A program made the translations under genes and the position numbers. The notes under the pieces are model-generated. The model saw nothing but the letters and a program-made list of their open reading frames with translations. It ran no database searches and was not told the origin of the DNA. A stretch of 64,000 nucleotides of DNA from Blastocystis sp. Blastoise. Lineage: Eukaryota; Protista; Bigyra: Opalinata. Shown piece after piece: positions 1 through 41,105 of the stretch (position 1 is the first letter of the stretch; each line of letters begins with the position of its first letter). The stretch lies in the NCBI GenBank assembly GCA_039096225.1, contig JBBPEB010000003.1, forward strand, positions 558,001 to 622,000, written 5' to 3'.

Positions 1-52
1 TATATATCTATTTTTTCTCACTATATATACCTATATATACTTTTATATATAG

Positions 53-4253
<4,201 letters not shown>

Positions 4254-11667: not shown

Positions 11668-11685
11668 ACTACGTGGTGACCCCTG
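11668..11685 (-). mobile_element. Candidate terminal inverted repeat at the 5' end of a Buster-type hAT element
   Basis: Top strand ACTACGTGGTGACCCCTG reads CAGGGGTCACCACGTAGT on the minus strand, ~200 bp upstream of the transposase ATG. CAGGGGT/CAGTGGT starts are typical of Buster/Charlie TIRs and stand out in this AT-rich context. Confidence 0.65.
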
Positions 11686-11832
11686 CTTTGTTGTAATGAA
11701 TTCTTATTTGCAAGTAAAGTGATCTATAAAAAGTTTATAATTTTTATATAAAGATTCTGTCAAACAGAATCACTTTTCTGTTTTTTAAATAATTAGGGGA
11801 ATACTGCCTTTATGAAGGACAATCTAAACGTT

Positions 11833-11845
11833 TAAACTCCGGATT
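11833..11845 (+). promoter_or_regulatory. Candidate promoter element TAAACTCCGGATT (copy 1)
   Basis: The identical 13-mer occurs at 55584-55596; both copies lie in short divergent intergenic regions, 124-180 nt upstream of a + strand ATG. Confidence 0.4.
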
Positions 11846-11968
11846 TCTTAATTTTTTGTTTTCGATATAACGAAGTACACAGACTTTATTCTTAAAGTAT
11901 ATATTATTTTCTTCATTTAATATTGTATATATTTTTATATATTTCAAATTTATGACAAATCTCTATAG

Positions 11969-14900
11969 ATGAATTCTTCATTTTTGCTATTGTGTGTGGT
12001 CTTTTTCGCTTCCTTTCTGATGGGCGCACATGCAGAGGTTCCTCTTCAAAACACAGCTTTAAAAGTTGCATTCTTCCGTGTTAATGATTTGAGTGACTCT
12101 TCTATTTGCTCGACAACAGAAACTATTCAGACTTATACTGAATCTATACTTAATTATTTTAAGCTTCTTTTAGGTAATTCGATAACTCTTCCTTCAGAAA
12201 ATATATTTGTCTCTGATTGTATTACTTGTGATTCTACTTGTTATGAATCTACAGATACTGATTTTATGAATCAAATTACAAGTGAAACAACTGGAGATTA
12301 TAATATTAAGATTATATTAACTTCTTCTGGTGGTAATCGTGTTGCTTATTCTTCCCTTGGATCTTTATCCACTTTTACTGGTTATACCTCTCAACCTATT
12401 ATTTTCCCTTATATATCAATACCCTCAACTCTTTCTGAGAAGAATTCGCAAGAATCTCTTCTCTTGTATCATATTTCAAAGACTCTTGGTTTAGGTAATG
12501 CTAGTAAATCTACTTCTACTACAAATACTTTTGAATTCACTCAAACATCTTCTCAAGATGATTATGCTACTTTGATGGGTTCTTCTACTAATGGATGGCT
12601 CTCTATTCCTACTGTTTCTCAATATGTAAATATTATTTCTGAAAAGACTTTATCCTCCCATTGGATTAAAACTGTTGAAAATGGTAGTAGTCAAAAATAT
12701 CGTATACTTGCTTGGGATCATCCTTATTCTAGAACATTCCTTGGTGAATCTCAATCTACTCAAAATGAAGAGGATTCTATTGATTCAATCCTCTTTAAAA
12801 ATCATGTTCTTTCTTTAAATATTCCTATTAGTCAAACAACTATGTATTCTAATTTAGATTCTTCTATTTCTGAAGCTTCTATTCTTTTAGAATATAGATA
12901 TAATCTTGATAAATCTATTGTTGGTGGTGTTGGTAATCAAGGTTCACGTATAGTCTCTGGTATTATTAATAAAGAAGGATATAATGATAATGAATCTATT
13001 TTACTTAATGCTCATATTGATGATATGAATTCTTGGATTGATAGTTCTATTCCTTATGGTGCTACTTGGTATGCTAAAGAATGTGATCTTGGTACTTTAT
13101 ATATTAAAGTTATTAATATACATAATGTCAATACACCTATTACTTCTTCTATGCTTACTGAAGAACGTCAAACTATTAATTCTATTCCTTATATTGATAT
13201 TGAAATTACTTATATTCCTTCTACTCCTTTTACTCCTACTCATCTTCCTGTACCTTCTCTTACTGATTTCTATTTCTCTCCTACTTTAAGTGAATGTACT
13301 ATTAATCAAGATGATGCTACACTTACTTGCTCTTATATTACTTATGATACTTTCCTTATTTCTTTCATTCCTACTGAAACTTTTGGTATTCCTCGTATTT
13401 ATTTTAATAATAATGAATCACCTCTTATTGGTATTTATGGTGTCAATTCTTTCCCTGGTAATGCTATTACTTCTTTTACTGTTGGTTTTGGTAATGAAGG
13501 ATATGGTAAATTCACTTGTACTATTACTTCAGGTACACCTATAAGAGATGTTAATGGAGGTAGTATCATTCAAAGAGTATTAAATGGTAATTTACAATAT
13601 AAATATGGTAATGGAGACGCTGCTGTTACTATTGATGGAGTCTCTTATGCATATACATTATCATCTGATAATCCAATGGATTTCTGGCTTCATATTGCTA
13701 CTGGTACAACTAGTACAAATGTTATTGCTGGAACAGAAAAAATCGCTTTAATGGATCAATATGGTGGTATCACAAATGCTAATCAAAAGGCTACTTATAC
13801 TTATGATGATATACAGGCTGATTTTGTTTTGTTTTGTACTGGATCAGGTACTCCTGGTTTAGCTTTAGGTTTAAGTGACAATAAACCTCAAGGTTTATAT
13901 ATTGGTACAATTACAGATATTCGTGTTTCTGATAATGTGAACGTAAATCATGTTTATATTGATAGACCTGTTTGGAGAGCTACTTCACGTCTTGCCTTTG
14001 AAATTACAAGTGCTTCTACTGTTGTTATTACTCCTGCTTCTATTCCTTCTGGTAAATATACTATTCCTTCTCTTCTTATTGCTCAGAGCTTAGCTGCTAA
14101 TACTTGGCTAACTTATCCTATAGATAAACTTGTTTCTGGAGATTATTTCTTTGTTGATTTCAAAGGTCTTATTCCTTCTTCTCTTCTTATGTATTTACAT
14201 ACTGATTCAGGTATAAAGACTATTGATCTTAATCTTCTTGGAGGTAGAACTGATGTTTCCCTTAAAATTACTTATGAACAATTAATTGCTCTTGGTACTT
14301 TCGGTTCTGTTTCTAGATTCTCTTTCTCTGATACTGTTGTTCTTCATGCTATTCGTCCTCTTTATAGTACTAATTATTATACTGCTAAATCTGTTACTAA
14401 ACCTGCAACTATGGCTACTACAAAGTACAATCTTGGAGTTAGTGCTAATGATAAGAGTTCAATGCGTTTCCAATTACTTGCTGGTACTACTACTATTCCT
14501 GAGACATACACTTTCACTTCTTTTACTTCTACTGTTGATGGTACATCTTTTGAATTTTCTACAATTGATACTTCTTATTCTCTTTCTTATGATATATCTA
14601 ATGTTCATTATGAATTTGAAACATATACTATTGATAATGGTATTGTAGATATATCTCCTCTTCAAACAGATAATGTATCTTCTTGGTCTATAACTCCTGA
14701 ACCTCAAGGTTTCTCTTTTGATACTACTACAGGTATTTTATCTGGTTCTCCTACCATTACTGGATCATTTACTTATACTATAACTGCTTCAAATGGTTAT
14801 TCCACAAAAGATCTTAGTGTTACTTTAATATTCCCTGAAGGTCGTTGTGAAGCTATTGATAATTGGCCTTCTACTGATATTGGTGTAACTACTACTCTTT

Positions 14901-17900
14901 CTTGTGAATCTGGATATAAAGGTATAGCTAAACGAACATGTTTAGCTGGTGGTATTTGGAGTGATGTTGATTCTTCATTATGTGTTTCTCTTTCTAATAT
15001 AGAAACTATTGCTACTTACTTATCATTAGATAATATGCAAGCTGGTGGTCATAAAGTAACTACTTCTTGGAGAATGAATACTAATGAATCTTGGACTGTT
15101 GCTGGTTGGTTTAGAATGTATAAAGCTAATAGTGATACAAGAGCTACTATATTTGCTTTAACTGATGGTACTAAATATATTAGTAATGGTTTTAGATTTT
15201 TAGAAGCAAGACATTTAAATTCTGGTGATGCTTATGATACTCTTCATTTAGATGCTTGGGGTAGTAGTGTTGATACAAATGGTTTAACTACTGGTATTTG
15301 TACTCAAATAGCTGATAATACTTGGAGATATTTAATATTCCGTTATACTCATAGTGAAACTAATTCTCAAAAGAAAATAGAAGTAATCTTTGATAATACT
15401 GTTTGTCTTACTTATACAAGTTCTTTATTAGCTAATTGGGCTACTACTCCTGATAAGAATTATATGTCTATTGGTAGTATTGAAAATAATTTAAGTCCTC
15501 GTACTATTCATAGTACACTTGCTTTTAAAGATTTAGAATATTATCCTGGTGTTGCTCTTAGTACTGAATATTTTGATATTATTAAATCTGAAAAACCTGA
15601 AGATATTGCTGTTGGTATTAAATCTGTATATCATGCTACTGATTCTATTAAAGTAGATATTATTCCTAACAGTGTTCCTGAAACTTTAACTAATGTTCAA
15701 TTTGGTTGTATGGCTATTGAAGAAAATACTGAAATACCTTCTGTTGATACTGTTGCTAGTTCAAATAGTATTACTGAATATACATTACATTCTATTTCTA
15801 CTATAACTATTCCTATTACTGATATTACAAAGAATTATTATGTTGTTTGTGCTGGTAAGAGTGATTCTATCTCTACTATTAATGAAATCATGCTTCTTAA
15901 TAAGGTATTAATACATGCTAATTCTGAATTACTTATATCCGATAGTACTGTATCTTCTTCTCTTATTAGTTTTGATAAGAATCATTTCTGGTTACCTATG
16001 AGAGAAGATATATCTGATTTCTCTATTTCTTTCATTCTTTTAACTACTAAAGCTACTGCTACTCTTCTTTCTTATACTGATGGTGCTTATTTAACTACTG
16101 TTGGATCTAAATTCTTATACATTTCTTCTGGTTATTTAAGATTTATTGCTAAACATAGTAGTAATGCTGAAATTGTCTCTAATGTTGTTGTTAATAATGA
16201 TGTTTGGCATAGTATTGTATTAACTTATTCTATGGCAACAAAGACTTATTCTTTATATATTGATCAAGAATTACAAGGCTCTACTCAACTTGATGATAGT
16301 TATACTATAAATACTTTAGAAGAAGCTTATATGGTTTATTACTATTCTGGTACTTATGGTGATTTCCAAGGATCTTTAAAGAATGTTATTTTCCATCATA
16401 GTACACTTTCTATTGAAGAAATTGCTGCTGCTGATAGTCAAAAACCTTTAGAATTTGGTCTCTCTGCTTCTACAACTACTACTATTGATTCTATTACTTA
16501 TAATTATAGAATCTTAAAATTAGCTATTACTACTCCTATTGATGTATATATATATCCTGCCTTAGCTACTGATGATATTCCTTCTATTGAAACTATAAAG
16601 ATTAATGGTCAACATGTATCTGTTCTTGTAGGTATAGATCAATCAACTACTATTAATAATCTTATTTCTGATACTGCTTATAAAGTATATTTGTATGCTG
16701 AAAAAGATACTATTTTTGCTGTTTCCCAAGATTCTATTGAAACACTTGCTGTAGCTACTGCTACTTTATCTTCTTCAAATTGTCAACAATTTATAGCTAC
16801 TCAAGGTTGTTCTCCATCTGGTCTTATTGATACTACTAATGCATATACTTGCTCTTCTATGATTCCTTCTTCTGTATCTGGTTATTGTATTTGTAAAGAT
16901 GGTAGAAAGATGAATGCAGTTACTTGTAATCATGATGAATTTACTTGTTCTGATATTTGTAATGCTGATGAATCATTTGTTGAAGTTAATAAATGGATTA
17001 TGAGACATCATACTTCTTTTACTGCTTATACTGGTGTTAATAATATTGTACCTGTTCTTCCAAGACAAGTATATTTCTATGATTCTATTAATCAAGCATA
17101 TTCTTCTGGATCAGCACCTACTAATGTTGATACTGCTGTAAATTCTATTTTTACATTCCATTCTATGATTTATATTGATACTACAGGTAGTTATACTTTC
17201 CAATATAAAGTAGATGATCAAGTATATTTCTTAATTGATTCCTTGAATGTAAATAACGTTGTAATTAATAAAAATACATATATTGGTACTTGGACATCTG
17301 TAACTCCTAAAACACTTACAAAAGGTTGGCATAATGCTTATGTTATTAATTATAATGGTGGTGGTGCTGGTGGTATTGAAATTCAAATGAAAGGACCTAA
17401 TGATAGTGCTTTCAAAGAAATAACAGGTCAATATCGTATGAGTACTCATGGTATTTTAGCTCAATATAAAACAGAATTTTATGGTGATTGTTCTGTTAAT
17501 TATTATGAGAGTACTACAAATACATTCTTTACAAGTGAATTAATGATGGATTTATCTAATGAAAATGGTAATACATTTGGTACTTCTGGAAATAGTTTAA
17601 CTGATAATTTCTTTGCTTCTTATACTTTTGTTTTATATCCTACAAATACAAATACTTATACTATTAGTGTAGAAGCTATTGATGGTATTAAGATTAATGT
17701 TGATGGTGTAACTAAACTTACAAATAATGTTTGTGGTGAATATACTGGATCTTTTGATTTAGATCTTGTAGCTAATACACCTGTTATGTTCTTTGTACAA
17801 TATAGAACAAATGGTGTTTCTCATAAATTAAAATTATATTGGAAATCTTCAGATATGACTGAAAAAGTCTTAATTCCTTCTTCTAATATGTATAGAGAAG

Positions 17901-29900: not shown

Positions 29901-32900
29901 GAATGAAATGTCCTGAAGATGTTTATGATGGTAAGACTTATGAATCAACTCCTACTAATACACATATTTCAATTCCATGTGGTGAAGGATTTATTGGTAC
30001 TTATGAAAGATTCTGTAATTTAGATAAGACATGGTCTGATCCAGTTGATCATTGTACATCTACTAATGTTGTTTGTATACCTAGTATAACAGAAATTAAT
30101 ATAGTTAGATTACAACCTGTTCCTGAATATACTATTAGTTGTAATAGTGAAATAATAGAATCTTATTCTATTAATTCAGAATTACCTGATGGTTTAGTAT
30201 TTAATAGTGAAACTGGTATAATATCTGGTATTCCTACAACAACATTAATACCATCTACTAAATTTATAATAAGTGTAAATACTCCTTTAGTTGGTGGTTA
30301 TGAAATGAATGTAATAATAAATGAATTATATTGTGATGTTGATGGTGAATGGAATTTTGCTGTTGCTGGTACAACTGCTACACATGAATGTGATTCTCTT
30401 AAAGAAGGTAGTATTACTAGAGTATGTAATAATGTATATCCTGCTACATGGGAAGATGAAGAAAATACATGTAAATATAAAGCTCCTACTATTAGTTATG
30501 ATGAAAGTAGTTATATTTGGTATAGAAAGACATCTGAAATTAATATAATGCCTACTATAGGAAATTATGTATCATCTTATACTATTAGCCCTGAATTACC
30601 ATCTGGATTAGTATTTAATAGTGAAAATGGTTCTATTAGTGGTACTCCTTTAATTTATTCTGCTATTACTGAATATACTATTACTGCTATTAATGAAGAT
30701 AAATCTGGTAGTGTAATTATTGCTATTACAATTCTTAATAAGATATGTGATGCTACTGAAGATGGTAAATATGAAGAAAGTGTTGCTGGTACAAAGATAG
30801 AATTATCTTGTCCTGAAAGTGAATTATATAGTGGTTTAATATCTCGTGAATGTATTGATAATGATAATAGTTATTGGAGTGAAATTACTAATACATGTAC
30901 TAGAAATACATGTAATAGTATAACTGAAGATGATGATCTTATATGGGATATTACTCCTACTGATACAACAGCAACTAAATCATGTGATGAAGGATTAGAA
31001 GGTAGTATAACAAAGAAATGTAATTTAGATGGTACATGGTCTGATACTATTAATACTTGTGGATTACCTACTATTGATTGTACTATTAGTACTTCTGAAA
31101 TTACTATTGTAAGATTACAACCTATTCCTACTTATACTATTACTTGTAATAAACCTATTACTACATTTACTATTAATCCTATTATTTCTGATATTGAAAC
31201 ATTATCATTTAATTCTGAAACTGGTATTATTTCTGGATATTATACTTCTGTAATATCTAAACAAACATATACTATTCAACCTGTTGGTTATAGTGGTAGT
31301 GTATCTTTATCATTAACTATAAATGAATTATATTGTAATGTTGATGGTGAATGGTCTGAAACTGTTGCTGGTACAAGTGCTGTTCATGAATGTGATTCTC
31401 TTAAAGAAGGTAGTATAACAAGATTATGTAATAATGAATATCCTGCTAGTTGGTCTGAATCAATTATTAATACATGTACTTATAAAGCTCCTACTATTAG
31501 TTATGATGAAAGTAGTTATATTTGGTATAGAAAGACATCTAATGTAAATATAATGCCTACTATTGAAAATTATGTATCATCTTATACTATTAGTCCTGAA
31601 TTACCATCTGGATTAGTATTTAATAATGAAAATGGTTCTATTAGTGGTACTCCTTTAATTTATTCTCCTCTTGTTGAATATACTATTACTGCTATTAATG
31701 AAGATAAATCTGGTAATGTTAAATTATCTATTACAATTCTTAATAAGATATGTGATGCTACAGAAGATGGTTATGAAGAAACTACTAGTGGTAATTCATT
31801 TAGTATTCCTTGTGAAAATAATGAATTATATGAAGGTTCTATTACTCGTGAATGTATTGATAATGATAATAGTTATTGGAGTACTGAAACTGATAGTTGT
31901 ATAAGAATGAAATGTCCTGAAGATGTTTATGATGGTAAGACTTATGAATCAACTCCTACTAATACACATATTTCAATTCCATGTGGTGAAGGATTTATTG
32001 GTACTTATGAAAGATTCTGTAATTTAGATAAGACATGGTCTGATCCAGTTGATCATTGTACATCTACTAATGTTGTTTGTATACCTAGTATAACAGAAAT
32101 TAATATAGTTAGATTACAACCTGTTCCTGAATATACTATTAGTTGTAATAGTGAAATAATAGAATCTTATTCTATTAATTCAGAATTACCTGATGGTTTA
32201 GTATTTAATAGTGAAACTGGTATAATATCTGGTATTCCTACAACAACATTAATACCATCTACTAAATTTATAATAAGTGTAAATACTCCTTTAGTTGGTG
32301 GTTATGAAATGAATGTAATAATAAATGAATTATATTGTGATGTTGATGGTGAATGGAATTTTGCTGTTGCTGGTACAACTGCTACACATGAATGTGATTC
32401 TCTTAAAGAAGGTAGTATTACTAGAGTATGTAATAATGTATATCCTGCTACATGGGAAGATGAAGAAAATACATGTAAATATAAAGCTCCTACTATTAGT
32501 TATGATGAAAGTAGTTATATTTGGTATAGAAAGACATCTGAAATTAATATAATGCCTACTATAGGAAATTATGTATCATCTTATACTATTAGCCCTGAAT
32601 TACCATCTGGATTAGTATTTAATAGTGAAAATGGTTCTATTAGTGGTACTCCTTTAATTTATTCTGCTATTACTGAATATACTATTACTGCTATTAATGA
32701 AGATAAATCTGGTAGTGTAATTATTGCTATTACAATTCTTAATAAGATATGTGATGCTACTGAAGATGGTAAATATGAAGAAAGTGTTGCTGGTACAAAG
32801 ATAGAATTATCTTGTCCTGAAAGTGAATTATATAGTGGTTTAATATCTCGTGAATGTATTGATAATGATAATAGTTATTGGAGTGAAATTACTAATACAT

Positions 32901-35900
32901 GTACTAGAAATACATGTAATAGTATAACTGAAGATGATGATCTTATATGGGATATTACTCCTACTGATACAACAGCAACTAAATCATGTGATGAAGGATT
33001 AGAAGGTAGTATAACAAAGAAATGTAATTTAGATGGTACATGGTCTGATACTATTAATACTTGTGGATTACCTACTATTGATTGTACTATTAGTACTTCT
33101 GAAATTACTATTGTAAGATTACAACCTATTCCTACTTATACTATTACTTGTAATAAACCTATTACTACATTTACTATTAATCCTATTATTTCTGATATTG
33201 AAACATTATCATTTAATTCTGAAACTGGTATTATTTCTGGATATTATACTTCTGTAATATCTAAACAAACATATACTATTCAACCTGTTGGTTATAGTGG
33301 TAGTGTATCTTTATCATTAACTATAAATGAATTATATTGTAATGTTGATGGTGAATGGTCTGAAACTGTTGCTGGTACAAGTGCTGTTCATGAATGTGAT
33401 TCTCTTAAAGAAGGTAGTATAACAAGATTATGTAATAATGAATATCCTGCTAGTTGGTCTGAATCAATTATTAATACATGTACTTATAAAGCTCCTACTA
33501 TTAGTTATGATGAAAGTAGTTATATTTGGTATAGAAAGACATCTAATGTAAATATAATGCCTACTATTGAAAATTATGTATCATCTTATACTATTAGTCC
33601 TGAATTACCATCTGGATTAGTATTTAATAATGAAAATGGTTCTATTAGTGGTACTCCTTTAATTTATTCTCCTCTTGTTGAATATACTATTACTGCTATT
33701 AATGAAGATAAATCTGGTAATGTTAAATTATCTATTACAATTCTTAATAAGATATGTGATGCTACAGAAGATGGTTATGAAGAAACTACTAGTGGTAATT
33801 CATTTAGTATTCCTTGTGAAAATAATGAATTATATGAAGGTTCTATTACTCGTGAATGTATTGATAATGATAATAGTTATTGGAGTACTGAAACTGATAG
33901 TTGTATAAGAATGAAATGTCCTGAAGATGTTTATGATGGTAAGACTTATGAATCAACTCCTACTAATACACATATTTCAATTCCATGTGGTGAAGGATTT
34001 ATTGGTACTTATGAAAGATTCTGTAATTTAGATAAGACATGGTCTGATCCAGTTGATCATTGTACATCTACTAATGTTGTTTGTATACCTAGTATAACAG
34101 AAATTAATATAGTTAGATTACAACCTGTTCCTGAATATACTATTAGTTGTAATAGTGAAATAATAGAATCTTATTCTATTAATTCAGAATTACCTGATGG
34201 TTTAGTATTTAATAGTGAAACTGGTATAATATCTGGTATTCCTACAACAACATTAATACCATCTACTAAATTTATAATAAGTGTAAATACTCCTTTAGTT
34301 GGTGGTTATGAAATGAATGTAATAATAAATGAATTATATTGTGATGTTGATGGTGAATGGAATTTTGCTGTTGCTGGTACAACTGCTACACATGAATGTG
34401 ATTCTCTTAAAGAAGGTAGTATTACTAGAGTATGTAATAATGTATATCCTGCTACATGGGAAGATGAAGAAAATACATGTAAATATAAAGCTCCTACTAT
34501 TAGTTATGATGAAAGTAGTTATATTTGGTATAGAAAGACATCTGAAATTAATATAATGCCTACTATAGGAAATTATGTATCATCTTATACTATTAGCCCT
34601 GAATTACCATCTGGATTAGTATTTAATAGTGAAAATGGTTCTATTAGTGGTACTCCTTTAATTTATTCTGCTATTACTGAATATACTATTACTGCTATTA
34701 ATGAAGATAAATCTGGTAGTGTAATTATTGCTATTACAATTCTTAATAAGATATGTGATGCTACTGAAGATGGTAAATATGAAGAAAGTGTTGCTGGTAC
34801 AAAGATAGAATTATCTTGTCCTGAAAGTGAATTATATAGTGGTTTAATATCTCGTGAATGTATTGATAATGATAATAGTTATTGGAGTGAAATTACTAAT
34901 ACATGTACTAGAAATACATGTAATAGTATAACTGAAGATGATGATCTTATATGGGATATTACTCCTACTGATACAACAGCAACTAAATCATGTGATGAAG
35001 GATTAGAAGGTAGTATAACAAAGAAATGTAATTTAGATGGTACATGGTCTGATACTATTAATACTTGTGGATTACCTACTATTGATTGTACTATTAGTAC
35101 TTCTGAAATTACTATTGTAAGATTACAACCTATTCCTACTTATACTATTACTTGTAATAAACCTATTACTACATTTACAACTGATTTCGAATTACCTAAT
35201 AATGTTGTTTTTAATTCTGAAACTGGTATTATTTCTGGTATACCTCAAGCTACTCTTTCTTATACTTTAATTACTATTCAACCTGTTGGTTTCGTTGGTA
35301 GTGTATCTTTATCATTAACTGTAAATGAATTATATTGTGATGTTGATGGTGAATGGTCTGAAACTGTTGCTGGTACAAGTGCTACACATGAATGTGATTC
35401 TCTTAAAGAAGGTAGTATTACTAGAATTTGTCTTAATGAATATCCTGCTAGTTGGTCTGAATCAATTATTAATACATGTACTTATAAAGCTCCTACTATT
35501 AGTTATTTATATGATACTTATACATATCAACGTTTACTTTCTAAAGTATCATTGGTTCCTGTTCTTGGTAATCATATTAGTTCTATTACTATTAGTCCTG
35601 AATTACCATCTGGATTAGTATTTAATAATGAAGATGGTTCTATTAGTGGTACTCCTTTAATTTATTCTCCTCTTGTTGAATATACTATTACTGCTATTAA
35701 TGAAGATAAATCCACTAGTTATATTTTGAAGATTAAAGTAGTTAATACAATTTGTGATGCTGATATTGAAAATGGCTGGCCACTTACTTATGCTAATAAT
35801 GTTGCTACTAAGTCATGTTCTGATGAACTATTTGTAGGTTCTATTACTCGTGAATGTATTCAAAGTGATAATAGTTATTGGGGTGATATTCAAGATACAT

Positions 35901-38410
35901 GTGTTCTTGGTAAATGTGGTTCTGTTGAAGAAGATAATTTATCTTGGCCTATAACTGAAATGGGTACTGTTGCTACTATTCCTTGTACTACTCCTTATGA
36001 AGGTGTATATTCTAAAGAATGTACTTCTGAAGGTTCTTGGAGTGAAACTACTAATGGTTGTTATATTCCTGAAGTTATTTGTACTCCTACTGTTTCTAGT
36101 ATATTACTTCAAAGATATCAACCTGTTGAAGATTACACTGTTTCTTGTTCTATTAATATGTATGCCTTTACTATTACTCCTTCTCTTCCTAGAGGACTTC
36201 AATTTGATGCTGCTACTGGTGTTATTTCTGGTACTCCTGAAGAAGTTGCTATTTATCAAGCTTATACTATTTCTGTTGTTGAACCTTATTCTGGTTCTTT
36301 TACTGTATATCTTAAAGTAGATGAATCATATTGTGAACCTGAAGATGTTTGGATTCGTACTCCTGTTGGTCAAACTCAAGCTGTTTCTTGTAATAATTAT
36401 GATGAATATGATGGTGAAAATACTCGTACTTGTTTAACTACTTATCCTGCTACTTGGAGTGATATTACTTATAGTGATTGTATTATGAAGGCACCTTATT
36501 CTTTCTCTTATCCTAGTGCTTCTATTTCTATTCCTAAGAAGGTTGCTATATCTCCTCTTATTCCTAGTTATAAGGGTAAAGATGTTTCATTTACTATTAA
36601 TCCTCAACTTCCTGAAGGTTTAGTATTTAATGAAAATACTGGTGTTATTTCTGGTACTCCTACTGAAGAATCTGATTCTACTTATACTATTACTATTTCT
36701 AATATTAGTGGTCAATCTGAATTTACAATTTCTATTGTTGTTGGTAGTGTATATTGTCAAGCTGAAACTATTAATGGTTATGTTTTCGATGTTACTGATG
36801 CTGATACAACTATTACTCTTTCTTGTCCTAATGGTTATAGTGGTTCTATTACTAGATATTGTTCAATTACTGGTGAATGGAATCCTGTTCAATATGATTG
36901 TACTCAATTAAGATGTCCTGCTACAACTATTATTTATGGTAGTATTACTTTAGAATTACCTAGTACTTTAGCTGGTCAAAAAGCTGGTCATCAATGTTCT
37001 GTTGGTGGTATTTATGTACAATGTCAAAATGATGGTACTTGGTCTGATGTCGTTGATAATACTTGTACTTCTTGTAGTAGTGGCCAATATCCTGCTGCTC
37101 TTCCTGAAGGTGGTTTTGTTTGTACTGAATGTCCTGCTGGTAAGATTTGTCCTGATGGTACATTAGAAACAATTGAAGGATGTTTTGGTCAATTCTATGC
37201 TCCTGCTGGTTCTTCTTATTGTAAATTATGTGATAATGGTATAACTGAAAATAGTTCAATTGGTAATACTTATTGTAATTATTGTCAAGATGGTGAATAT
37301 GTATTAGATGGTGTTTGTACTAGTGATCATTATTGTGAACCTATAATGGATGTTGATGGTTATTGGATTAGAACATTATATGGACTTAAACAATCTATTT
37401 ATATTAATGCTAATAATAAGGTTGGTTATGCTCATAGATATTGTATTTATTCTGAAGAAGAAGGATATCATTTTGGACCTGTTGATTATTCTGATATTGT
37501 TGATCAAAATGTTGATGCTGGTAGATCTATTATTGATGTTAATTTCATTTTCAATAATTTAGCTATTTATCATTATTCTGAAGAAGCTGAAGAATTAATA
37601 GCTCGTGTATTTGTACAAAATTATGGTATGAGAATTGGTTATATTAATAGTTATAGTGCTGCTTATACTGTTGAACATGGTACTTATACTGTTAGTATTC
37701 ATGTCCGTTTCGAATCTAACTATATTTCTTTATCTCGTTTTGAGAAATATATTCCTTATTCTATTAATACTGTTATGAAGAAATTACGTGAATATAATCA
37801 TATTATTTTCCATGAATATGTTTATCTTACTATTCCTAATTATATTGATACTGTTTCTCTTACAGATACTTGTACTAATGCTGATTATGAAACTGATCTT
37901 ACTCAATATGTCTTTAATAATTGTTATGCTGGTGCTAAGGGTACTGTTTCTACTAGATGTTTACAAGATCGTTATTACAATTACTTCACTTATCTTGCTT
38001 ATTCATGTAAACCTATTACTCCTACTATTGCTGATCATACTTTTGTTGATGTTACTTATGTTGTTAATGAATTACCTCTTGCTTCTTTATATTGTGAAAA
38101 GAAGATTAGTCTTCTTAGAGCTTTATTAAAACATACTAATACTGTTTTATATAGTTTTGATGTTTATAATATGAGAGAAGCTTCTACTGAAATTTCTGTC
38201 TCTACTTCATTTACTATAAGAATTGAAACAAGTAACGAAGATGCTACTGCTGTTTATGAAATTTTCAAAGCTTTAGAAAATGAAATTTCTTATATTATTA
38301 CTAATGATCTTAAGATTGCTGGAGAAGAAATTACTGTTACTTTCAATGAAAATAATTCTGGTATGGTTTCTGGTACTGAAATGGCTAGAAGACGTCTTAG
38401 AGCTCTTTAA
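11969..38410 (+). CDS. Giant (8813 aa) secreted multidomain adhesin/lectin-like protein: signal peptide, degenerate metzincin (M11-like) domain, 4x LamG/ConA, 2x PA14, 2-3x FAMeT-like, WSC, DUF1349-like, bacterial Ig-like, many He_PIG Ig repeats alternating with HRM/sushi-like Cys modules, galactose-binding jelly roll, F5/8C-like, GCC2/GCC3-like Cys-rich region, SEA-like tail
   Basis: Uninterrupted 26,442-nt ORF with strong T/A-ending codon bias. N-terminus MNSSFLLLCVVFFASFLMGAHA. He_PIG-like LPSGLVFNxENGSISGTP repeated many times. LamG-like SISLWFK..WTHIGFT..IYING. PA14-like GSYTFQYKVDD..LTKGWH..YNGGG. WSC-like MSPEDCLAEC..YYGLTQGNKCVC..CTGDNLSYCGG. F5/8C-like LFDGSTSTK..PSDWTLIGSND..YSKYRIQF. 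Domain names come from motif recognition, not a profile search. Confidence 0.93.
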   Translation: MNSSFLLLCVVFFASFLMGAHAEVPLQNTALKVAFFRVNDLSDSSICSTTETIQTYTESILNYFKLLLGNSITLPSENIFVSDCITCDSTCYESTDTDFMNQITSETTGDYNIKIILTSSGGNRVAYSSLGSLSTFTGYTSQPIIFPYISIPSTLSEKNSQESLLLYHISKTLGLGNASKSTSTTNTFEFTQTSSQDDYATLMGSSTNGWLSIPTVSQYVNIISEKTLSSHWIKTVENGSSQKYRILAWDHPYSRTFLGESQSTQNEEDSIDSILFKNHVLSLNIPISQTTMYSNLDSSISEASILLEYRYNLDKSIVGGVGNQGSRIVSGIINKEGYNDNESILLNAHIDDMNSWIDSSIPYGATWYAKECDLGTLYIKVINIHNVNTPITSSMLTEERQTINSIPYIDIEITYIPSTPFTPTHLPVPSLTDFYFSPTLSECTINQDDATLTCSYITYDTFLISFIPTETFGIPRIYFNNNESPLIGIYGVNSFPGNAITSFTVGFGNEGYGKFTCTITSGTPIRDVNGGSIIQRVLNGNLQYKYGNGDAAVTIDGVSYAYTLSSDNPMDFWLHIATGTTSTNVIAGTEKIALMDQYGGITNANQKATYTYDDIQADFVLFCTGSGTPGLALGLSDNKPQGLYIGTITDIRVSDNVNVNHVYIDRPVWRATSRLAFEITSASTVVITPASIPSGKYTIPSLLIAQSLAANTWLTYPIDKLVSGDYFFVDFKGLIPSSLLMYLHTDSGIKTIDLNLLGGRTDVSLKITYEQLIALGTFGSVSRFSFSDTVVLHAIRPLYSTNYYTAKSVTKPATMATTKYNLGVSANDKSSMRFQLLAGTTTIPETYTFTSFTSTVDGTSFEFSTIDTSYSLSYDISNVHYEFETYTIDNGIVDISPLQTDNVSSWSITPEPQGFSFDTTTGILSGSPTITGSFTYTITASNGYSTKDLSVTLIFPEGRCEAIDNWPSTDIGVTTTLSCESGYKGIAKRTCLAGGIWSDVDSSLCVSLSNIETIATYLSLDNMQAGGHKVTTSWRMNTNESWTVAGWFRMYKANSDTRATIFALTDGTKYISNGFRFLEARHLNSGDAYDTLHLDAWGSSVDTNGLTTGICTQIADNTWRYLIFRYTHSETNSQKKIEVIFDNTVCLTYTSSLLANWATTPDKNYMSIGSIENNLSPRTIHSTLAFKDLEYYPGVALSTEYFDIIKSEKPEDIAVGIKSVYHATDSIKVDIIPNSVPETLTNVQFGCMAIEENTEIPSVDTVASSNSITEYTLHSISTITIPITDITKNYYVVCAGKSDSISTINEIMLLNKVLIHANSELLISDSTVSSSLISFDKNHFWLPMREDISDFSISFILLTTKATATLLSYTDGAYLTTVGSKFLYISSGYLRFIAKHSSNAEIVSNVVVNNDVWHSIVLTYSMATKTYSLYIDQELQGSTQLDDSYTINTLEEAYMVYYYSGTYGDFQGSLKNVIFHHSTLSIEEIAAADSQKPLEFGLSASTTTTIDSITYNYRILKLAITTPIDVYIYPALATDDIPSIETIKINGQHVSVLVGIDQSTTINNLISDTAYKVYLYAEKDTIFAVSQDSIETLAVATATLSSSNCQQFIATQGCSPSGLIDTTNAYTCSSMIPSSVSGYCICKDGRKMNAVTCNHDEFTCSDICNADESFVEVNKWIMRHHTSFTAYTGVNNIVPVLPRQVYFYDSINQAYSSGSAPTNVDTAVNSIFTFHSMIYIDTTGSYTFQYKVDDQVYFLIDSLNVNNVVINKNTYIGTWTSVTPKTLTKGWHNAYVINYNGGGAGGIEIQMKGPNDSAFKEITGQYRMSTHGILAQYKTEFYGDCSVNYYESTTNTFFTSELMMDLSNENGNTFGTSGNSLTDNFFASYTFVLYPTNTNTYTISVEAIDGIKINVDGVTKLTNNVCGEYTGSFDLDLVANTPVMFFVQYRTNGVSHKLKLYWKSSDMTEKVLIPSSNMYREDYSRCFQSEVDSLTLPYTYLNYKYTLDCPSGYNGYAYFSCADPKDKPFAYGMWSTEQRDTCYYNPISNAIYPLTTLDLHRYETVSNALTFDNIATSITISPSLPSGLTFNEDNGLISGTVTELIPETNYIVTLSNPVNTVSIVITISVVETYCSGDNYPTTAAGENAIGSCGDSSLFSGSKSATCGSVYPATWTNIINTCSRNQCSSITTDDMVFEATNTNSYATIYCPYTYKTIIRFCNLDMTWGDIENNCGKIVCIQEEYEGYIWPATEVNTIRSIACGEGLEGNRKRSCNVSNNDSNQGEWSNIIDSSECMIAPVNIDISIPTSSHVMKEVPISFDFYGQNYHIDINSILLSEGCSIQSTINDISILPQYTILIRRSSECIITFNTGFLLNTENQILTPRSPFSTTLTIAYRPIPVLNESYNNHIGYATELGINKYVVDSRNTENEAIQLLTGGLSYEDKDINTPYSISTSPYSSIGDELSISLWFKIDSIGSKNILTKAGTNGNNYSIFINDNNELIISTGNEMDTCAYYNTNVILNIDTWTHIGFTMKTTSAYSGTKTIYINGESTTCTYSSMYISSQSPVILGETGGITVSDFKLYKYVLTNNEMIELYNTFAIPSIRITVPLTTTSNIIDIPIEFSESVKNININKVSIINSIGGKDTIMSWTSTTLPSPSIHISFPISSGTRTLTTKLIFDTEFIQSTTTDIYNKYTEYIITYNSIIENPESSSFIPIFNPESSTSMSSNTPITFSFGQEVLFNGNSVIHYFDSEHSDEYNGDILISSLESSLTTLYIILPGGFALGRSIQFSMDSNICTALDGTPCPNVSSENTWIFNTNSPFTGTVVKSIEGNNKYASLIMYTITYPRQVATFDSSLISITNAVLSTVSINKNVVTFGIAPVFITETEILESVDVSIELPSEVAEDYSIPAITSTSIISESFTAYSLVRDYSFKNTGNDEIANKNCIYQNTISSWTYDSSSTSNSAYTFTSTTPSWECENTEDITFSTPIINSGISISFWYKTSDNSQTFTFIKKMFADNDHLDYEIGMKNNGLYIYTGDRTGLYLMSYTAPAVNQWHHIVYTLQATSTTNSKVSIYIDNKFIKSLDFGKVFKNEANPLYIGSSGSFTMSQVRIYGVPINAAIINTLYNQKSVPTISISSETTSISDSTPFTISVTTSKELTGIDNTIFSTVPMDAATINLPTPIDATHFTYTITPLTLGTISLHVKAKVAFDSNKIYNSMSNTISITNTATSHILPMFTILSAVPVTSAIVSFTIDTSALGITIATSEISASYGTIKSSSVSGYVYTGIFKLADNTDISQPGVITLNRNICGDDGNSLCVFEIPFASFLTTTENLRTAADDGNKEKFDTEYYQQLRWNTGSKDFVITFEANCQNDALIGIREYPISTTSTYLTFVLGGGSNSGLTIRKTVDSTNTNLATGIQANWCTSGSYVPMWVKKVGTTVTLGKGTYSDSATAALSYASFPEFTYTSFVAVLDNWGKPVYYRNVRITSLNTDNDTRIPVPELTIDTSSSPYSATLKFTRVPTTELASSSIQTVNMEVSEFTKVSNDEYTFKVSSVNTGINDNVHSITIPENSVSLQVGESTIGNSATTWSRESIPITVSLTWNPETASQYIYVPVTLTFNVPVTVYSSDIQVSDGYQVIDVYNTGNGCIATINAPITPITVTIPEGLVTLGGTSSPAASLDIHRSETATILPYINSNSNYPIWPATYAISNGELFFTLSLSSKEGIIIALSTAQSINDNSLIINFGKSTGTQTVISNGAGTVLSTITHDITIVSDNYQTYWVNYKNNVISIGTGIESTSESTLVSYEYNTIVATYFTFSTGESPAYIKNLSISSGSSSSIYTPLTITVSDASSGTTDIPIVINVELPEGTTLLPSQWIVGNGVMLSGINNHEYLFYPNINGISTFFLPTGVVKTSTMTSAQSNVYSYIIPSRLTSYILPAVQENNYYNYVSSGWKLPTTNLGSVKFNYMSTNDNNLKIAFSNSLDTFNSNRYEITVCGNSKIVSAINDETVSTVLGTPVDCSTSAAYEILVDSTTIYLKSSTGTVYVSIPLDSSLDATYFTFAASTSITDGYLTSKDTVHTISIRTTSISYSTNFETVEDWPNDGYTSVARTSFAAETVDGETVGALSYLTSGNVEWGTRTNLIYFSHTLPTGWTELTFSMKFTETTGTKQQGCIGLAKTSDLTWLADAICLQHWTDGYTIKHQRKLSSWSYNGDATFSGTYTNWVDFKFVKVSDTQYDYYFKQDTTAAHTEWTKFSSSSDSDMSGVNRLCIHGYDEDGSAVSSSAKTYFSHMVVTVPIAPQQVTSTFGCMSMSSSLPVITIDNMSPEDCLAECASSEYYGLTQGNKCVCIPTYDDLTQHIDNSLCTTICTGDNLSYCGGSDNMYVIPTTNTLYYNEPFSATSGWKQDFPNPSIASVSYANGQMTITTTANTDITSTTRNNAPFMYKPMPKEFTSEVTIHFPTGTSNHAAGYAITSEDGQYPISLCIIDYYTLNTPLIVYKAYNSATTYFTNAGGAMTDVTLRLRRDANNNYYCSYKRAGGSWSVEYTDNTKTATTSTRLNLLGKSVNMGKATVYSDFKLYTTFAETTATLSSTIDSTVYSNTVSVYVTFSQNVLLTVDSPFVVSNCAVSNVLALSDTVYLLTVSISSLGTFSIGLPTSITDINDQPIAASNTITGVYNIKTFNSWLIPESTGFYISTNEIIVYLVSSLPLSTASLSLLSITNADLINSEVINENTYKLAMTARSSDIVTIYLPEGILSYAEGVYNTKSNIVMYYYSPTHCNAGTSEGFEWPMTPIGTYSTFNCESEYDGIIKRYCKLNGLWGVVDNSCIIKKCANQQIDDFLWLAADINTIRYANCPQYQSGSLYRQCTLIDNVATWGELVNNCVDMPITSVTYPAISVHRYESIEVTPTIVGIAHTFESTVLPEGISINPTTGVISGSSAILLDIQDYAITVTNGAGSYETTVSIVINQLYCEDESYGSVIAGESKEIPCENTAEYGYTSRTCLPQYPATWSEIVSTCELRSCSEDIDTIYNQTWETKTATEVIDLDYYDGGLDRCVLHRTCQVDGTWSEITSDCTRITCASTTVNDDTITLPETNVEMNYDLECPMYYSGNAYYTCTLVEGNGVWSDLILTNCTISPIEHYTYDIAYHALYINSAIPMQSPVTTGIIDSYSITPDPTTSGLTFDTETGAISGTATTIGTYIYTLTATNAAGSVEFTYELYIYDHYCEEVDGFAQTVPGEIATKPCDPILYTGDYTRTCLKSTIEFGPIINGCVKRIPYDISYSDSNNYSFYKGESVHLIPTVSGIVESISCSPALPGSLSIDTVGVIRGNAPETLDSTEYTVTFGNSEGSNTVILTLSVSTTTKEYTWKESIVSQDTTEWTQYNYDDSTWNTITFASNTHTETTVYYRTHFTIYDEEAMQYTFTINTIGGIEVYINGQSVFISTENKPFTIATYTFTLSTYDIIHTGTNTLAIRIELPESDMSTQLEYSIVPIYGNCDMNASNASSSIASSATETLAMLFDGSTSTKGYFEGGCPEKTFYIEYSYSEPTVITRYTLIAANDCGKRHPSDWTLIGSNDDFATETIVDTVSGNVFTQTYQSLSFNVDTPGAYSKYRIQFTKCQTSIFTNNALAYDNALQLSEIQYCTGNLPRSCSATDGYGDAMENGLSTKACPSGTIGYIQSTCTEGSYTNEEYLCSPITEFDLSYSETSLEVNMNVVFTINPVTTATVNSYSSTSLPEGVTLNSETGIVTGSINSVGTYIIMITAINNNNQRATTQVTITVVDGGCMENDVKYSVGSTIERDCGDILKEGHLEYTCQRSDSYEWILTNTYCTYKAPTISYDESSYIWYRKTSNVNIMPTIENYVSSYTISPELPSGLVFNNENGSISGTPLIYSPLVEYTITAINEDKSGNVKLSITILNKICDATEDGYEETTSGNSFSIPCENNELYEGSITRECIDNDNSYWSTETDSCIRMKCPEDVYDGKTYESTPTNTHISIPCGEGFIGTYERFCNLDKTWSDPVDHCTSTNVVCIPSITEINIVRLQPVPEYTISCNSEIIESYSINSELPDGLVFNSETGIISGIPTTTLIPSTKFIISVNTPLVGGYEMNVIINELYCDVDGEWNFAVAGTTATHECDSLKEGSITRVCNNVYPATWEDEENTCKYKAPTISYDESSYIWYRKTSEINIMPTIGNYVSSYTISPELPSGLVFNSENGSISGTPLIYSAITEYTITAINEDKSGSVIIAITILNKICDATEDGKYEESVAGTKIELSCPESELYSGLISRECIDNDNSYWSEITNTCTRNTCNSITEDDDLIWDITPTDTTATKSCDEGLEGSITKKCNLDGTWSDTINTCGLPTIDCTISTSEITIVRLQPIPTYTITCNKPITTFTINPIISDIETLSFNSETGIISGYYTSVISKQTYTIQPVGYSGSVSLSLTINELYCNVDGEWSETVAGTSAVHECDSLKEGSITRLCNNEYPASWSESIINTCTYKAPTISYDESSYIWYRKTSNVNIMPTIENYVSSYTISPELPSGLVFNNENGSISGTPLIYSPLVEYTITAINEDKSGNVKLSITILNKICDATEDGYEETTSGNSFSIPCENNELYEGSITRECIDNDNSYWSTETDSCIRMKCPEDVYDGKTYESTPTNTHISIPCGEGFIGTYERFCNLDKTWSDPVDHCTSTNVVCIPSITEINIVRLQPVPEYTISCNSEIIESYSINSELPDGLVFNSETGIISGIPTTTLIPSTKFIISVNTPLVGGYEMNVIINELYCDVDGEWNFAVAGTTATHECDSLKEGSITRVCNNVYPATWEDEENTCKYKAPTISYDESSYIWYRKTSEINIMPTIGNYVSSYTISPELPSGLVFNSENGSISGTPLIYSAITEYTITAINEDKSGSVIIAITILNKICDATEDGKYEESVAGTKIELSCPESELYSGLISRECIDNDNSYWSEITNTCTRNTCNSITEDDDLIWDITPTDTTATKSCDEGLEGSITKKCNLDGTWSDTINTCGLPTIDCTISTSEITIVRLQPIPTYTITCNKPITTFTINPIISDIETLSFNSETGIISGYYTSVISKQTYTIQPVGYSGSVSLSLTINELYCNVDGEWSETVAGTSAVHECDSLKEGSITRLCNNEYPASWSESIINTCTYKAPTISYDESSYIWYRKTSNVNIMPTIENYVSSYTISPELPSGLVFNNENGSISGTPLIYSPLVEYTITAINEDKSGNVKLSITILNKICDATEDGYEETTSGNSFSIPCENNELYEGSITRECIDNDNSYWSTETDSCIRMKCPEDVYDGKTYESTPTNTHISIPCGEGFIGTYERFCNLDKTWSDPVDHCTSTNVVCIPSITEINIVRLQPVPEYTISCNSEIIESYSINSELPDGLVFNSETGIISGIPTTTLIPSTKFIISVNTPLVGGYEMNVIINELYCDVDGEWNFAVAGTTATHECDSLKEGSITRVCNNVYPATWEDEENTCKYKAPTISYDESSYIWYRKTSEINIMPTIGNYVSSYTISPELPSGLVFNSENGSISGTPLIYSAITEYTITAINEDKSGSVIIAITILNKICDATEDGKYEESVAGTKIELSCPESELYSGLISRECIDNDNSYWSEITNTCTRNTCNSITEDDDLIWDITPTDTTATKSCDEGLEGSITKKCNLDGTWSDTINTCGLPTIDCTISTSEITIVRLQPIPTYTITCNKPITTFTTDFELPNNVVFNSETGIISGIPQATLSYTLITIQPVGFVGSVSLSLTVNELYCDVDGEWSETVAGTSATHECDSLKEGSITRICLNEYPASWSESIINTCTYKAPTISYLYDTYTYQRLLSKVSLVPVLGNHISSITISPELPSGLVFNNEDGSISGTPLIYSPLVEYTITAINEDKSTSYILKIKVVNTICDADIENGWPLTYANNVATKSCSDELFVGSITRECIQSDNSYWGDIQDTCVLGKCGSVEEDNLSWPITEMGTVATIPCTTPYEGVYSKECTSEGSWSETTNGCYIPEVICTPTVSSILLQRYQPVEDYTVSCSINMYAFTITPSLPRGLQFDAATGVISGTPEEVAIYQAYTISVVEPYSGSFTVYLKVDESYCEPEDVWIRTPVGQTQAVSCNNYDEYDGENTRTCLTTYPATWSDITYSDCIMKAPYSFSYPSASISIPKKVAISPLIPSYKGKDVSFTINPQLPEGLVFNENTGVISGTPTEESDSTYTITISNISGQSEFTISIVVGSVYCQAETINGYVFDVTDADTTITLSCPNGYSGSITRYCSITGEWNPVQYDCTQLRCPATTIIYGSITLELPSTLAGQKAGHQCSVGGIYVQCQNDGTWSDVVDNTCTSCSSGQYPAALPEGGFVCTECPAGKICPDGTLETIEGCFGQFYAPAGSSYCKLCDNGITENSSIGNTYCNYCQDGEYVLDGVCTSDHYCEPIMDVDGYWIRTLYGLKQSIYINANNKVGYAHRYCIYSEEEGYHFGPVDYSDIVDQNVDAGRSIIDVNFIFNNLAIYHYSEEAEELIARVFVQNYGMRIGYINSYSAAYTVEHGTYTVSIHVRFESNYISLSRFEKYIPYSINTVMKKLREYNHIIFHEYVYLTIPNYIDTVSLTDTCTNADYETDLTQYVFNNCYAGAKGTVSTRCLQDRYYNYFTYLAYSCKPITPTIADHTFVDVTYVVNELPLASLYCEKKISLLRALLKHTNTVLYSFDVYNMREASTEISVSTSFTIRIETSNEDATAVYEIFKALENEISYIITNDLKIAGEEITVTFNENNSGMVSGTEMARRRLRAL
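29471..35178 (+). repeat. In-frame coding tandem repeat, 2004-bp (668-aa) unit, about 2.85 near-identical copies; each unit consists of two diverged ~1-kb halves
   Basis: Units start TGTACTTATAAAGCTCC at 29471, 31475 and 33479. Identical shadow ORFs recur at 29667/31671/33675 and 30321/32325/34329 (spacing 2004). The third copy diverges at ~35179. Confidence 0.97.

Positions 38411-41056: not shown

Positions 41057-41105
<49 letters not shown>

Follow-up and report, generated by a model that had tools for sequence, protein, structure and literature searches.

What does a single reading frame of 8813 codons encode in the genome of a gut protist, and to what use might its product be put? The frame lies at positions 11969-38410 of a 64,000-nucleotide stretch of DNA from the tortoise-gut stramenopile Blastocystis sp. 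Blastoise (assembly GCA_039096225.1, contig JBBPEB010000003.1, positions 558,001 to 622,000), here called the window. Bare nucleotide positions below are those of the window, and every feature given for the gene is on the plus strand. We find that this open reading frame (ORF) is a real gene, that its product (hereafter the giant) is a secreted, acidic protein of about 967 kDa that is not membrane-anchored and, from genome searches, that it is one of a lineage-restricted multigene family and not a one-off gene. As to localisation, ligands and function we infer, leaning only slightly towards acceptance, that the giant is a secreted multivalent glycan-binding fibril from this family, and a structural and adhesive part of a fibrillar surface coat.

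The surface coat of Blastocystis consists of loose, carbohydrate-rich fibrils and is poorly characterised, and whether the cells use it to obtain bacteria as food is raised in that paper as an open question (PMC6115916); electron microscopy has shown bacteria being trapped for nutrition, with no mechanism described (PMC5608401). In the model that we favour, the giant would be exported through the endoplasmic reticulum (ER) and retained at or near the cell surface non-covalently, via its own lectin modules and/or its C-terminal domain and basic tail. Held there, it would act as a multivalent glycan-binding fibril, and would contribute to the coat both structurally and by adhesion, its targets being polysaccharide from plants, glycans of bacteria or mucus.

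A real gene for a secreted protein

The ORF listing gives 11969-38410 as one uninterrupted frame with an ATG start. Given the base composition of the ORF, its 8813 codons should hold about 668 stops, and the frame is open; each of the other five frames of the interval holds 421-1619. The gene has no intron and sits in an AT-rich eukaryotic contig where its neighbours carry introns. Tortoise-clade Blastocystis genomes have 21-23% G+C, long introns and canonical stop codons (PMC10690189). The low G+C content (22%) and neighbours with poly-Asn had hinted at a dictyostelid, a reading that was rejected because the best database match is a hypothetical protein of Blastocystis sp. Blastoise and tortoise isolates have a G+C content of this order. 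An initial annotation, made from the sequence alone, had called exactly this frame, with the same coordinates and without coding introns, and had remarked on the lack of poly-Asn, which agrees with a longest homopolymer of four residues.

The protein begins with a signal peptide (residues 1-22, 11969-12034; hydrophobic N-terminus MNSSFLLLCVVFFASFLMGAHA), and residues 1-900 are 94-96% identical in two paralogs, on contigs C18 and C24. The mature protein is about 967 kDa with an isoelectric point of 4.4. Apart from the signal peptide and two internal stretches that are marginal, a hydropathy scan of the whole protein gave no transmembrane segment. The C-terminus, which ends in ...GTEMARRRLRAL, is hydrophilic, with no hydrophobic window and no transmembrane or glycosylphosphatidylinositol (GPI)-like tail there, so that the giant does not have the C-terminal hydrophobic segment by which membrane- and GPI-anchored proteins are recognised. 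The signal peptide and the Pfam matches described below bear out its first description as a secreted-type giant mosaic of glycan-binding modules on a stalk of He_PIG domains and Cys modules.

Comparison with the C18 copy is informative with respect to constraint. Over gene nt 1-16445 the two are 97.8% identical in DNA with zero indels. With the gene's own copy denoted C33, the 5481 codons aligned between C33 and C18 differ by 361 substitutions (237 non-synonymous, 124 synonymous), and there is no indel and no stop in 16.4 kb. The non-synonymous and synonymous rates (dN 0.019, dS 0.034) give an omega of 0.55 (chi-square p 6e-8), which at the level of the whole alignment is moderate purifying selection with patches near 1. 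Because the frame is open where some 668 stops would be expected, and because the C18 comparison gives this omega without indel or stop, we judge the gene to be real.

A further sign comes from the sites for N-glycosylation. The giant has 3 N-x-T sequons, as against 70.5 +/- 8 expected from shuffles, a depletion of about 23-fold; the mirror pattern T-x-N occurs 81 times, N-x-S is found 30 times as against 67.5 expected, and control patterns show no such deficit. In two bacterial He_PIG giants with a similar composition N-x-T is not depleted (Fisher p 2e-18). The giant's paralogs follow the same trend as the giant, and a small background sample of non-family ORFs of the genome has 17 N-x-T and 38 T-x-N. 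The genome encodes STT3. Selection against sequons in secreted proteins is known for some protists. We take the depletion, a property of the sequence, as a strong sign that the giant is made and passes through the ER.

The evidence from RNA is slighter. A 6000-nt stretch of the ORF was compared with four runs. Run X1 (organism A, its RNA status being a guess) gave three contigs of 178-411 nt with 100% identity and low depth, and run X2, a poly-A gut metatranscriptome, gave five contigs of 158-487 nt with 96-100% identity, also at low depth; the other two runs gave no contigs on this stretch. The X2 contigs, which come from a different study (2025), span 22825-26968. A closely related strain or a paralog may be present, and is possibly transcribed, in the animal gut sample of X2. 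The RNA data neither show nor exclude expression of the giant gene.

Could the gene be a recently duplicated, effectively silent or decaying copy, its frame open only because the duplication and conversion are recent? The C18 copy is only about 2% different, parts of the gene have a dN/dS of 0.9-1.0, the protein collection discussed below lacks the exact sequence, and the paralog that spans the start of C24 and the end of C30 has stops, all of which would suit such a copy. Against it, the 361 substitutions between C33 and C18 brought no indel or stop and left the significant omega given above, the extreme avoidance of N-x-T has been kept, and contigs from RNA libraries match the ORF. A silent copy seems to us quite improbable.

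A dead protease head and a series of lectin-type modules

Pfam scans covered the two halves of the giant, ten overlapping pieces and the unassigned gaps. The first domain after the signal peptide (residues 23-900, 12035-14668) is a catalytically dead metzincin-like head, recognised through homology to a transmembrane-anchored paralog of 989 residues at L030:1183-4149 (27% identity, E 6e-77, about 875 residues). The paralog has the zinc motif HEFGHNMGYNH, a Met-turn-like ANIMG, a transmembrane anchor and a borderline Pfam match to Reprolysin_3 (22.9 bits; cut-off 22.4). The aligned position of the giant reads YHISKTLGLGN (nt 12467-12499), with all three His and the Glu replaced, and we therefore class the head as a dead metzincin. 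It has no Pfam match, and the combination of HExxHxxGxxH and Met-turn that marks metzincins is not found in the giant. Judged by these residues, the head is a pseudo-protease and cannot be a zinc protease. L030:1183-4152 (G000:C4:~2164.8-2167.8 kb) and its inverted twin L031 (C4:~2143.4-2147.9 kb), about 20 kb apart, encode two transmembrane-anchored metzincin-like proteins of about 1000 residues with intact HEFGHNMGYNH, and are thus active-looking relatives of the dead head.

Behind the head come the first He_PIG domain (residues 840-959) and the first HRM-like module (960-1005; together 14486-14983), found with Pfam and with hidden Markov models (HMMs) of our own, and then a string of lectin/CBM-type modules. 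Three Laminin_G_3 domains lie at residues 1351-1486 (16019-16426; 42 bits), 2457-2587 (19337-19729; 44.9 bits) and 2982-3121 (20912-21331; 50.1 bits). Between the first two is a PA14 dyad (17072-17869), one member of which (residues 1878-1967) scores 32 bits and the other (residues 1702-1758) a weak 17.7. They are followed by two Methyltransf_FA (FAMeT-type) beta domains (residues 3344-3484 and 3713-3822, 21998-23434; 41.9 and 35 bits) and, at 24926-25603, by a WSC domain (residues 4320-4381, 41.1 bits) and a weak, sub-cut-off DUF1349/ConA-like stretch (residues 4420-4545, 19.4 bits). Laminin_G_3, PA14, WSC and Methyltransf_FA thus all occur above their Pfam gathering thresholds, and a fourth LamG, the second PA14, the DUF1349 and a third FAMeT fall below.

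The initial annotation had proposed four LamG domains, two PA14, three FAMeT-like domains, a WSC and a DUF1349-like domain. The LamG domains at nt 16015, 19340 and 20940, the stronger PA14, the first two FAMeT and the WSC (24890-25130) were found by Pfam as well; the LamG at nt 15090 reaches only 17.5 bits against a cut-off of 27.6, the weaker PA14 is sub-threshold, the third FAMeT (nt 23850) has no support, and the DUF1349 proposal did not hold up beyond a weak score, its cut-off being 32.4 bits. In sequence searches of the PDB, the PA14 at residues 1873-1994 gave the only match of the 3.7-kb cassette in which it lies (see below), to RsgI3 of C. thermocellum (6qe7_A, E 8.9e-6); searches with the head and with residues 2982-4781 gave nothing significant. 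The N-terminal half is probably a series of ligand-binding modules made up of the dead metzincin, three or four ConA/LamG-like domains, the PA14 dyad, the FAMeT-type domains, the WSC and the DUF1349-like stretch.

Two further modules of this type are inserted in the stalk at 28106-28849, where the first annotation had already placed a jelly roll and an F5/8C-like domain (28075-28915). They are a galactose-binding jelly roll (BetaGal_ABD2, residues 5380-5479, Pfam 27 bits) and a CBM32/F5-8C-like module (residues 5497-5627), the latter matching 7nsn_A, the CBM32-bearing N-terminus of a bacterial GH92 mannosidase (E 4.7e-16).

These affinities bear on the ligand, and on a rival reading in which the giant is shed and tethers fibre, and would, like a cellulosome scaffoldin or a biomass sensor, link the cell, or the glycoside hydrolases that it secretes, to particles of plant cell wall in the hindgut of the herbivore. 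In favour of this, the nearest match of the PA14 dyad is the tandem PA14 of an anti-sigma factor, RsgI3. Bacterial carbohydrate-active enzymes (CAZymes) typically carry appendages such as the CBM32-like module, the BetaGal_ABD2/rhamnosidase-N-like jelly roll and the DUF1349-like stretch, tortoise isolates uniquely carry plant-fibre CAZymes (PMC10690189), and the giant has no membrane anchor. Set against this, the Pfam scans gave no cohesin- or dockerin-like and no catalytic module, and a rod of 57 modules is more typical of adhesins that project from a surface. We consider a shed scaffold rather unlikely. For the coat fibril that we prefer, plant polysaccharide is an equally possible ligand, because the PA14 and CBM32-like modules have affinities to a bacterial biomass sensor and to CAZymes, and because the tortoise clade carries CAZymes for plant polysaccharide (PMC10690189).

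A rod of He_PIG and HRM/sushi-like modules

From residue 4782 to 8366 (26312-37066), self-built HMMs, and an AlphaFold 2 (AF2) model of one unit, delineate a stalk in which HRM/sushi-like modules with four cysteines alternate with cadherin-like He_PIG domains. HMMs built from the giant's own modules count 21 He_PIG domains and 36-38 HRM-like modules in the whole protein. He_PIG (PF05345) scores 345 bits over 16 stretches and has a beta-sandwich fold; the protein atlas gave a score of 0.97 to He_PIG clusters, and nothing further than Ephrin_rec_like and He_PIG.

The Cys modules had been noticed from the start as a C..W..C pattern alternating with He_PIG, and they can now be named as Pfam HRM (PF02793). 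A single module scores as much as 47.5 bits (cut-off 26.2), and the sum over the C-terminal half is 149.5 bits; in a six-frame scan of the genome, too, the modules lie above the cut-off. A profile of 25 modules (A3) matches over its full length the HRMs of CRFR2 (positions 1-49, E 3.5e-4), ADGRB2, ADGRB3, latrophilin-1, ADGRL3 and ADGRF1, and its C-terminal half also matches complement CCP modules (CR1, E 5.6e-11). HRMs of class-B receptors have six conserved cysteines that form three disulfides. Alignment A3 has four per module, fewer than the six of the class-B HRM, and the modules cover positions ~3-56 of the 66 of the HRM profile. They are best called HRM/sushi-like on their sequences.

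The AF2 model of one 333-residue unit (HRM-HRM-HePIG-HRM-HePIG) has a mean predicted local distance difference test score (pLDDT) of 89 and consists of all-beta beads, whose best Foldseek matches are the extracellular cadherin (EC) arrays of protocadherin, CDH23 and CELSR, and SraP. As modelled, the C-terminal half forms a rod, in which 21 cadherin-like He_PIG domains are interspersed with about 36 HRM/sushi-like disulfide modules and the length of which is set by a 2-kb tandem repeat. This repeat, at 29471-35178, is a perfect array of 2.85 copies of a 2004-bp (668-residue) unit, 29471-33174 being equal to 31475-35178 with 0 mismatches. These 5.7 kb of perfect repeat, like the existence of close paralogs, go unmentioned in the initial annotation. 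The unit comprises two subunits of about 1 kb (HRM-HRM-HePIG-HRM-HePIG, periods 999 and 1005 bp), and the two subunit types are 61% identical in protein. Paralog P0005 has four such units, which differ from one another and are 87-90% identical to the unit of the giant gene. Because the units of P0005 differ mutually, repeats of this kind are genuinely a feature of the family, and the perfect identity in the giant gene may reflect a very recent expansion or an artefact of polishing.

The mixture of bacterial-type modules, so judged by their closest solved relatives, and eukaryotic disulfide modules pointed out in the initial annotation is likewise upheld, with the PA14 dyad (RsgI3), CBM32 (bacterial GH92) and He_PIG on the one side, and HRM/sushi, WSC and Ephrin_rec_like on the other. 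Parts may also have been acquired laterally, and the giant may serve in a surface coat or in capturing bacteria, as that annotation proposed.

The C-terminal region and its basic tail

The family is defined by its C-terminal region (37064-38371), in which alignment A1 and AF2 recognise a Cys-rich part of the Ephrin_rec_like type. Behind it lie two HRM-like modules, and a ferredoxin-like domain follows each of them. In the giant these alpha/beta domains occupy residues 8520-8619 and 8690-8801. Alignment A1, of nine family members, has 18 invariant columns over the region. The AF2 model has a pLDDT of 75, and the last 434 residues match no Pfam family above cut-off. Fold matches of the model are to generic ferredoxin/ACT folds (Foldseek template-modelling score <0.31) and, at Z 7-9.7, to ferredoxin, SEA and MAD-type domains. 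The SEA/MAD-type domains of MUC16, GPR126, PCDH15 and CELSR1 score Z ~7-8.6 and stand among unrelated ferredoxin folds of equal Z, so that in these models the likeness lies within the noise band of the aligner and assigns no specific family. A PDB sequence search with the C-terminus gave one chance-level match (E 0.96).

The protein ends in a conserved basic tail, ...ARRRLRAL, followed directly by the stop codon (38384-38410). Comparison of the family's C-termini gave KRRLRSL, RRRLFRIF, KKRVRL and KRRLRIRF directly at the stop of other members; every member examined has such a tail, at least eight in all and deposited gene models included; the pattern [KR]RR[LV]R.. (38384-38407 in the window) is present at the C-termini of P0001, P0005, P0008, P0012 and L020. 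In these secreted, unanchored proteins the tail may act as a sorting signal, as a cleavage site or in electrostatic retention.

The tail also speaks to the notion that the ORF is the ectodomain exon of a membrane receptor like the adhesion G-protein-coupled receptors (GPCRs), with transmembrane exons missed downstream. HRM, LamG, cadherin-like and SEA/MAD-like modules are indeed the repertoire of the ectodomains of CELSR-type adhesion GPCRs. Yet the stop codon follows a tail that is conserved at the very end of those eight or more members, the next plus-strand coding sequence downstream is an unrelated GNAT-like gene, the giant has no GPS or GAIN match in Pfam, and a six-frame scan of the genome had no 7tm_2 match, in a search that the control genomes could not validate. 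We regard a receptor ectodomain as highly improbable.

A lineage-restricted family shaped by duplication and gene conversion

When the genome was searched in six frames, at least four to five giant paralogs came to light, together with about ten mid-size relatives (ORFs of 950-3600 residues), all sharing the C-terminal region. In phmmer searches the C-terminal region of the giant matched seven proteins of the same organism at E 1.8e-100 to 1.7e-10, which places the giant within this family. For the structures of the paralogs, which are partial, the deposited models were used. The ORFs of the giant copies have 7594 (C18), 6374 (C30a) and 5696 (C2) residues; the C2 copy is the deposited model P0001 of 5942 residues, which adds two small 3' exons. 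One giant paralog is split between the start of C24 (G000:C24:1-4848) and the end of C30 (G000:C30:~183000-207070). The C24 match aligns gene nt 1-4200, its coordinates projecting to nt ~4848 at C24 position 1, and the C30 match resumes at gene nt 4856 on the last base of C30. C24 and C30 are probably adjacent, the assembly having broken inside a giant paralog. Close to the contig end this copy contains several stops; three deposited models represent it (P0034, partial, P0035 and P0005).

A cassette of 3.7 kb at 16761-20469, comprising the PA14 dyad, a He_PIG, three HRM-like modules, a Laminin_G_3 and flanking beta domains, stands out in the comparison of paralogs. Its edges are sharp, and between them the nucleotide identity to C2 and C30a is 93.3-93.5%. 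Just beyond the edges blastn either finds no match or drops to about 65% identity, and elsewhere the identity of the proteins is 22-56%; DNA matches of C2 and C30a are confined to the cassette and to parts of the repeat unit. Within it dS is 0.07 and dN/dS 0.94-1.0, between paralogs that are otherwise saturated. From the low dS and a dN/dS of about 1 we therefore read the similarity as indicating recent gene conversion, not constraint. P0001 was also considered as an ortholog from another species, the islands of about 95% identity then being inter-species transfers; this was rejected, since P0001, being encoded on C2 of this very assembly, is a paralog, and the islands are tracts of conversion within the genome.

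Where the window gene runs on unbroken in its C-terminal region, the C2, C30 and C18 copies are each interrupted by two short introns (G000:C2:1073835-1074192, C30:141774-142167 and C18:~37394-37750), which indicates loss or gain of introns within the family. The family diversifies by recent duplication and by segmental gene conversion, and its ORF sizes fit a repeat number that varies; tandem duplication and conversion between paralogs explain much of the giant's mosaicism.

This bears on the suggestion that the giant has a structural role at one stage only, in the cyst wall or its outer fibrillar layer, and is barely expressed in cultures of the vacuolar form. RNA support in culture-derived data is very low and the protein collection has no gene model; modules of the WSC/LamG type could bind chitin- or glucan-type wall polymers, as WSC lectins would suggest. 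Gene conversion, and ORF sizes that fit a variable repeat number, suit exposed interaction proteins better than a wall protein, and we think the suggestion unlikely. A bolder and more tentative extension of the coat model, possible though hardly probable, is that the coat of the tortoise clade, both fibrillar and bacteria-trapping, is built from lineage-specific, unanchored lectin-mosaic fibrils of ~0.6-1 MDa, varied by repeat number and by segmental gene conversion. If so, the fibrils would be a eukaryotic counterpart of the giant adhesins of bacteria and a contingency (variant-surface) system as well, made from bacterial-type CBM and Ig modules together with HRM/sushi modules.

The family has a narrow distribution. 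An exhaustive phmmer search with the C-terminal 434 residues against 1.84 billion representatives gave 10 matches at E<=1e-3, none of them from human-subtype Blastocystis; seven are hypothetical proteins of Blastocystis sp. Blastoise and three are metagenome fragments that match the Cys-rich part only. Word-based protein searches in three length ranges returned only the paralog models P0001, P0034 (partial) and P0035. The exact 8813-residue sequence is absent from a collection of 15 billion proteins, though paralog models from the same assembly are present, and it seems that the gene is unannotated or modelled differently in the deposited protein set. Searches of proteins and literature found no characterised protein with this architecture, in line with the first impression that none had been described; a literature search for the domain combination found no paper, and the genome paper does not discuss these domains (PMC10690189).

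The HRM itself is abundant in this genome. A 2025 survey, whose search did not extend to stramenopiles, found HRM essentially confined to holozoans plus Fonticula (PMC12716839); the six-frame scan of the Blastocystis sp. Blastoise genome gave at least 138 HRM matches, most of them above the Pfam cut-off. Dozens of HRM-bearing ORFs of about 1100-2500 residues lie outside the giant family (for example C22:510-515, C24:325-328, C22:1113-1116 and C33:1219-1222 kb).

Two further features of the genome may be added. Upstream of P0010, a small family member, L026:2026-2812 (G000:C22:67025-67811) is a (CCCTGG)n array in which the motif recurs about 138 times over 790 bp, the genome as a whole having about 22% G+C, and GC-rich simple-repeat ORFs are also found at L026:7057-8061. 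Downstream of the giant gene, at 40400-41700 on the plus strand, the GNAT-type acetyltransferase-like gene is divided into several short exons (among its ORF pieces are ...NEPFSQTIIRRDEKHTW... and ...ENNVRFYEKHGFIVLEKREF...), with a (TA)n microsatellite near 41050-41100. The genome paper counts two GNAT genes among bacterial transfers in the tortoise clade (PMC10690189).

Points that weigh against a coat fibril

Several points count against the coat fibril that we favour. The fold matches of the C-terminal region are generic. The RNA consists of a few low-depth contigs of 158-487 nt, and the absence from the protein collection may mean that RNA-seq-guided annotation had little support here. 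For the cassette, a dN/dS so close to 1 would fit relaxed constraint as well. Polishing of the Nanopore assembly could have homogenised the repeat, and the true length may therefore differ.

Comparison with known systems

No protein component of the Blastocystis surface coat is known, and the coat has repeatedly been proposed to function in bacterial capture, adhesion and protection (PMC6115916, PMC5608401). The giant family provides concrete candidates for coat proteins, open to antibodies, proteomics and work with recombinant modules, and bears on how a herbivore gut protist might attach to plant fibre or bacteria. Beyond the coat, the HRM matches in one stramenopile genome bear on the distribution of this module outside the range of the 2025 survey (PMC12716839), the depletion of N-x-T over 8813 residues is an unusually clean example of selection against N-glycosylation, and the gene illustrates how repeat-bearing giants escape RNA-guided annotation.

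The metzincin paralogs at C4:2144-2168 kb, homologous along the head, keep the zinc motif, the ANIMG and the transmembrane anchor, whereas in the giant the altered motif is fused to the lectin and stalk array. RsgI3 (PDB 6qe7) likewise carries PA14 as a dyad, but it is a membrane anti-sigma factor, and the dyad of the giant is embedded in a secreted protein. The ectodomains of the animal cadherin superfamily and of adhesion GPCRs (CELSR1, PCDH15, CDH23, ADGRL, ADGRB) share with the giant arrays of cadherin-like beads, LamG and HRM, and a ferredoxin-like domain of the SEA/MAD type at the base of the stalk, the similarity of which (Z ~8) is within aligner noise. The giant differs from adhesion GPCRs, and from class-B GPCRs generally, in having no GAIN/GPS, no seven-transmembrane domain and no transmembrane segment, and from animal HRMs in having four rather than six conserved cysteines and in also matching complement CCP/sushi modules.

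The LCCL/CCp/LAP proteins of apicomplexans are, like the giant, secreted, anchorless protist mosaics of bacterial-type and animal-type adhesion modules. No signature domain was detected in common; the domain set of the giant is different, its size far larger, and its stalk is a tandem repeat. He_PIG is chiefly a domain of bacterial adhesins, and the bacterial giant adhesins of the RTX/Bap type (MpIBP, SiiE, LapA, SraP) resemble the giant in size (about 1 MDa), in sugar-binding modules such as PA14 and in a long extender built of tandem Ig- or cadherin-like domains, which are nearly identical and whose number sets the reach; the ligand-binding region of SraP is among the fold matches of the stalk unit. 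Pfam scans of the giant gave no RTX/HemolysinCabind, type I secretion signal, LPXTG or other anchor, and it is therefore not an adhesin of the RTX/type I secretion class. Unlike these adhesins, the giant comes from a eukaryote: it has a signal peptide for the ER, HRM/sushi modules that are rich in Cys and an avoidance of sequons, and it carries its ligand modules in the N-terminal half of the chain.

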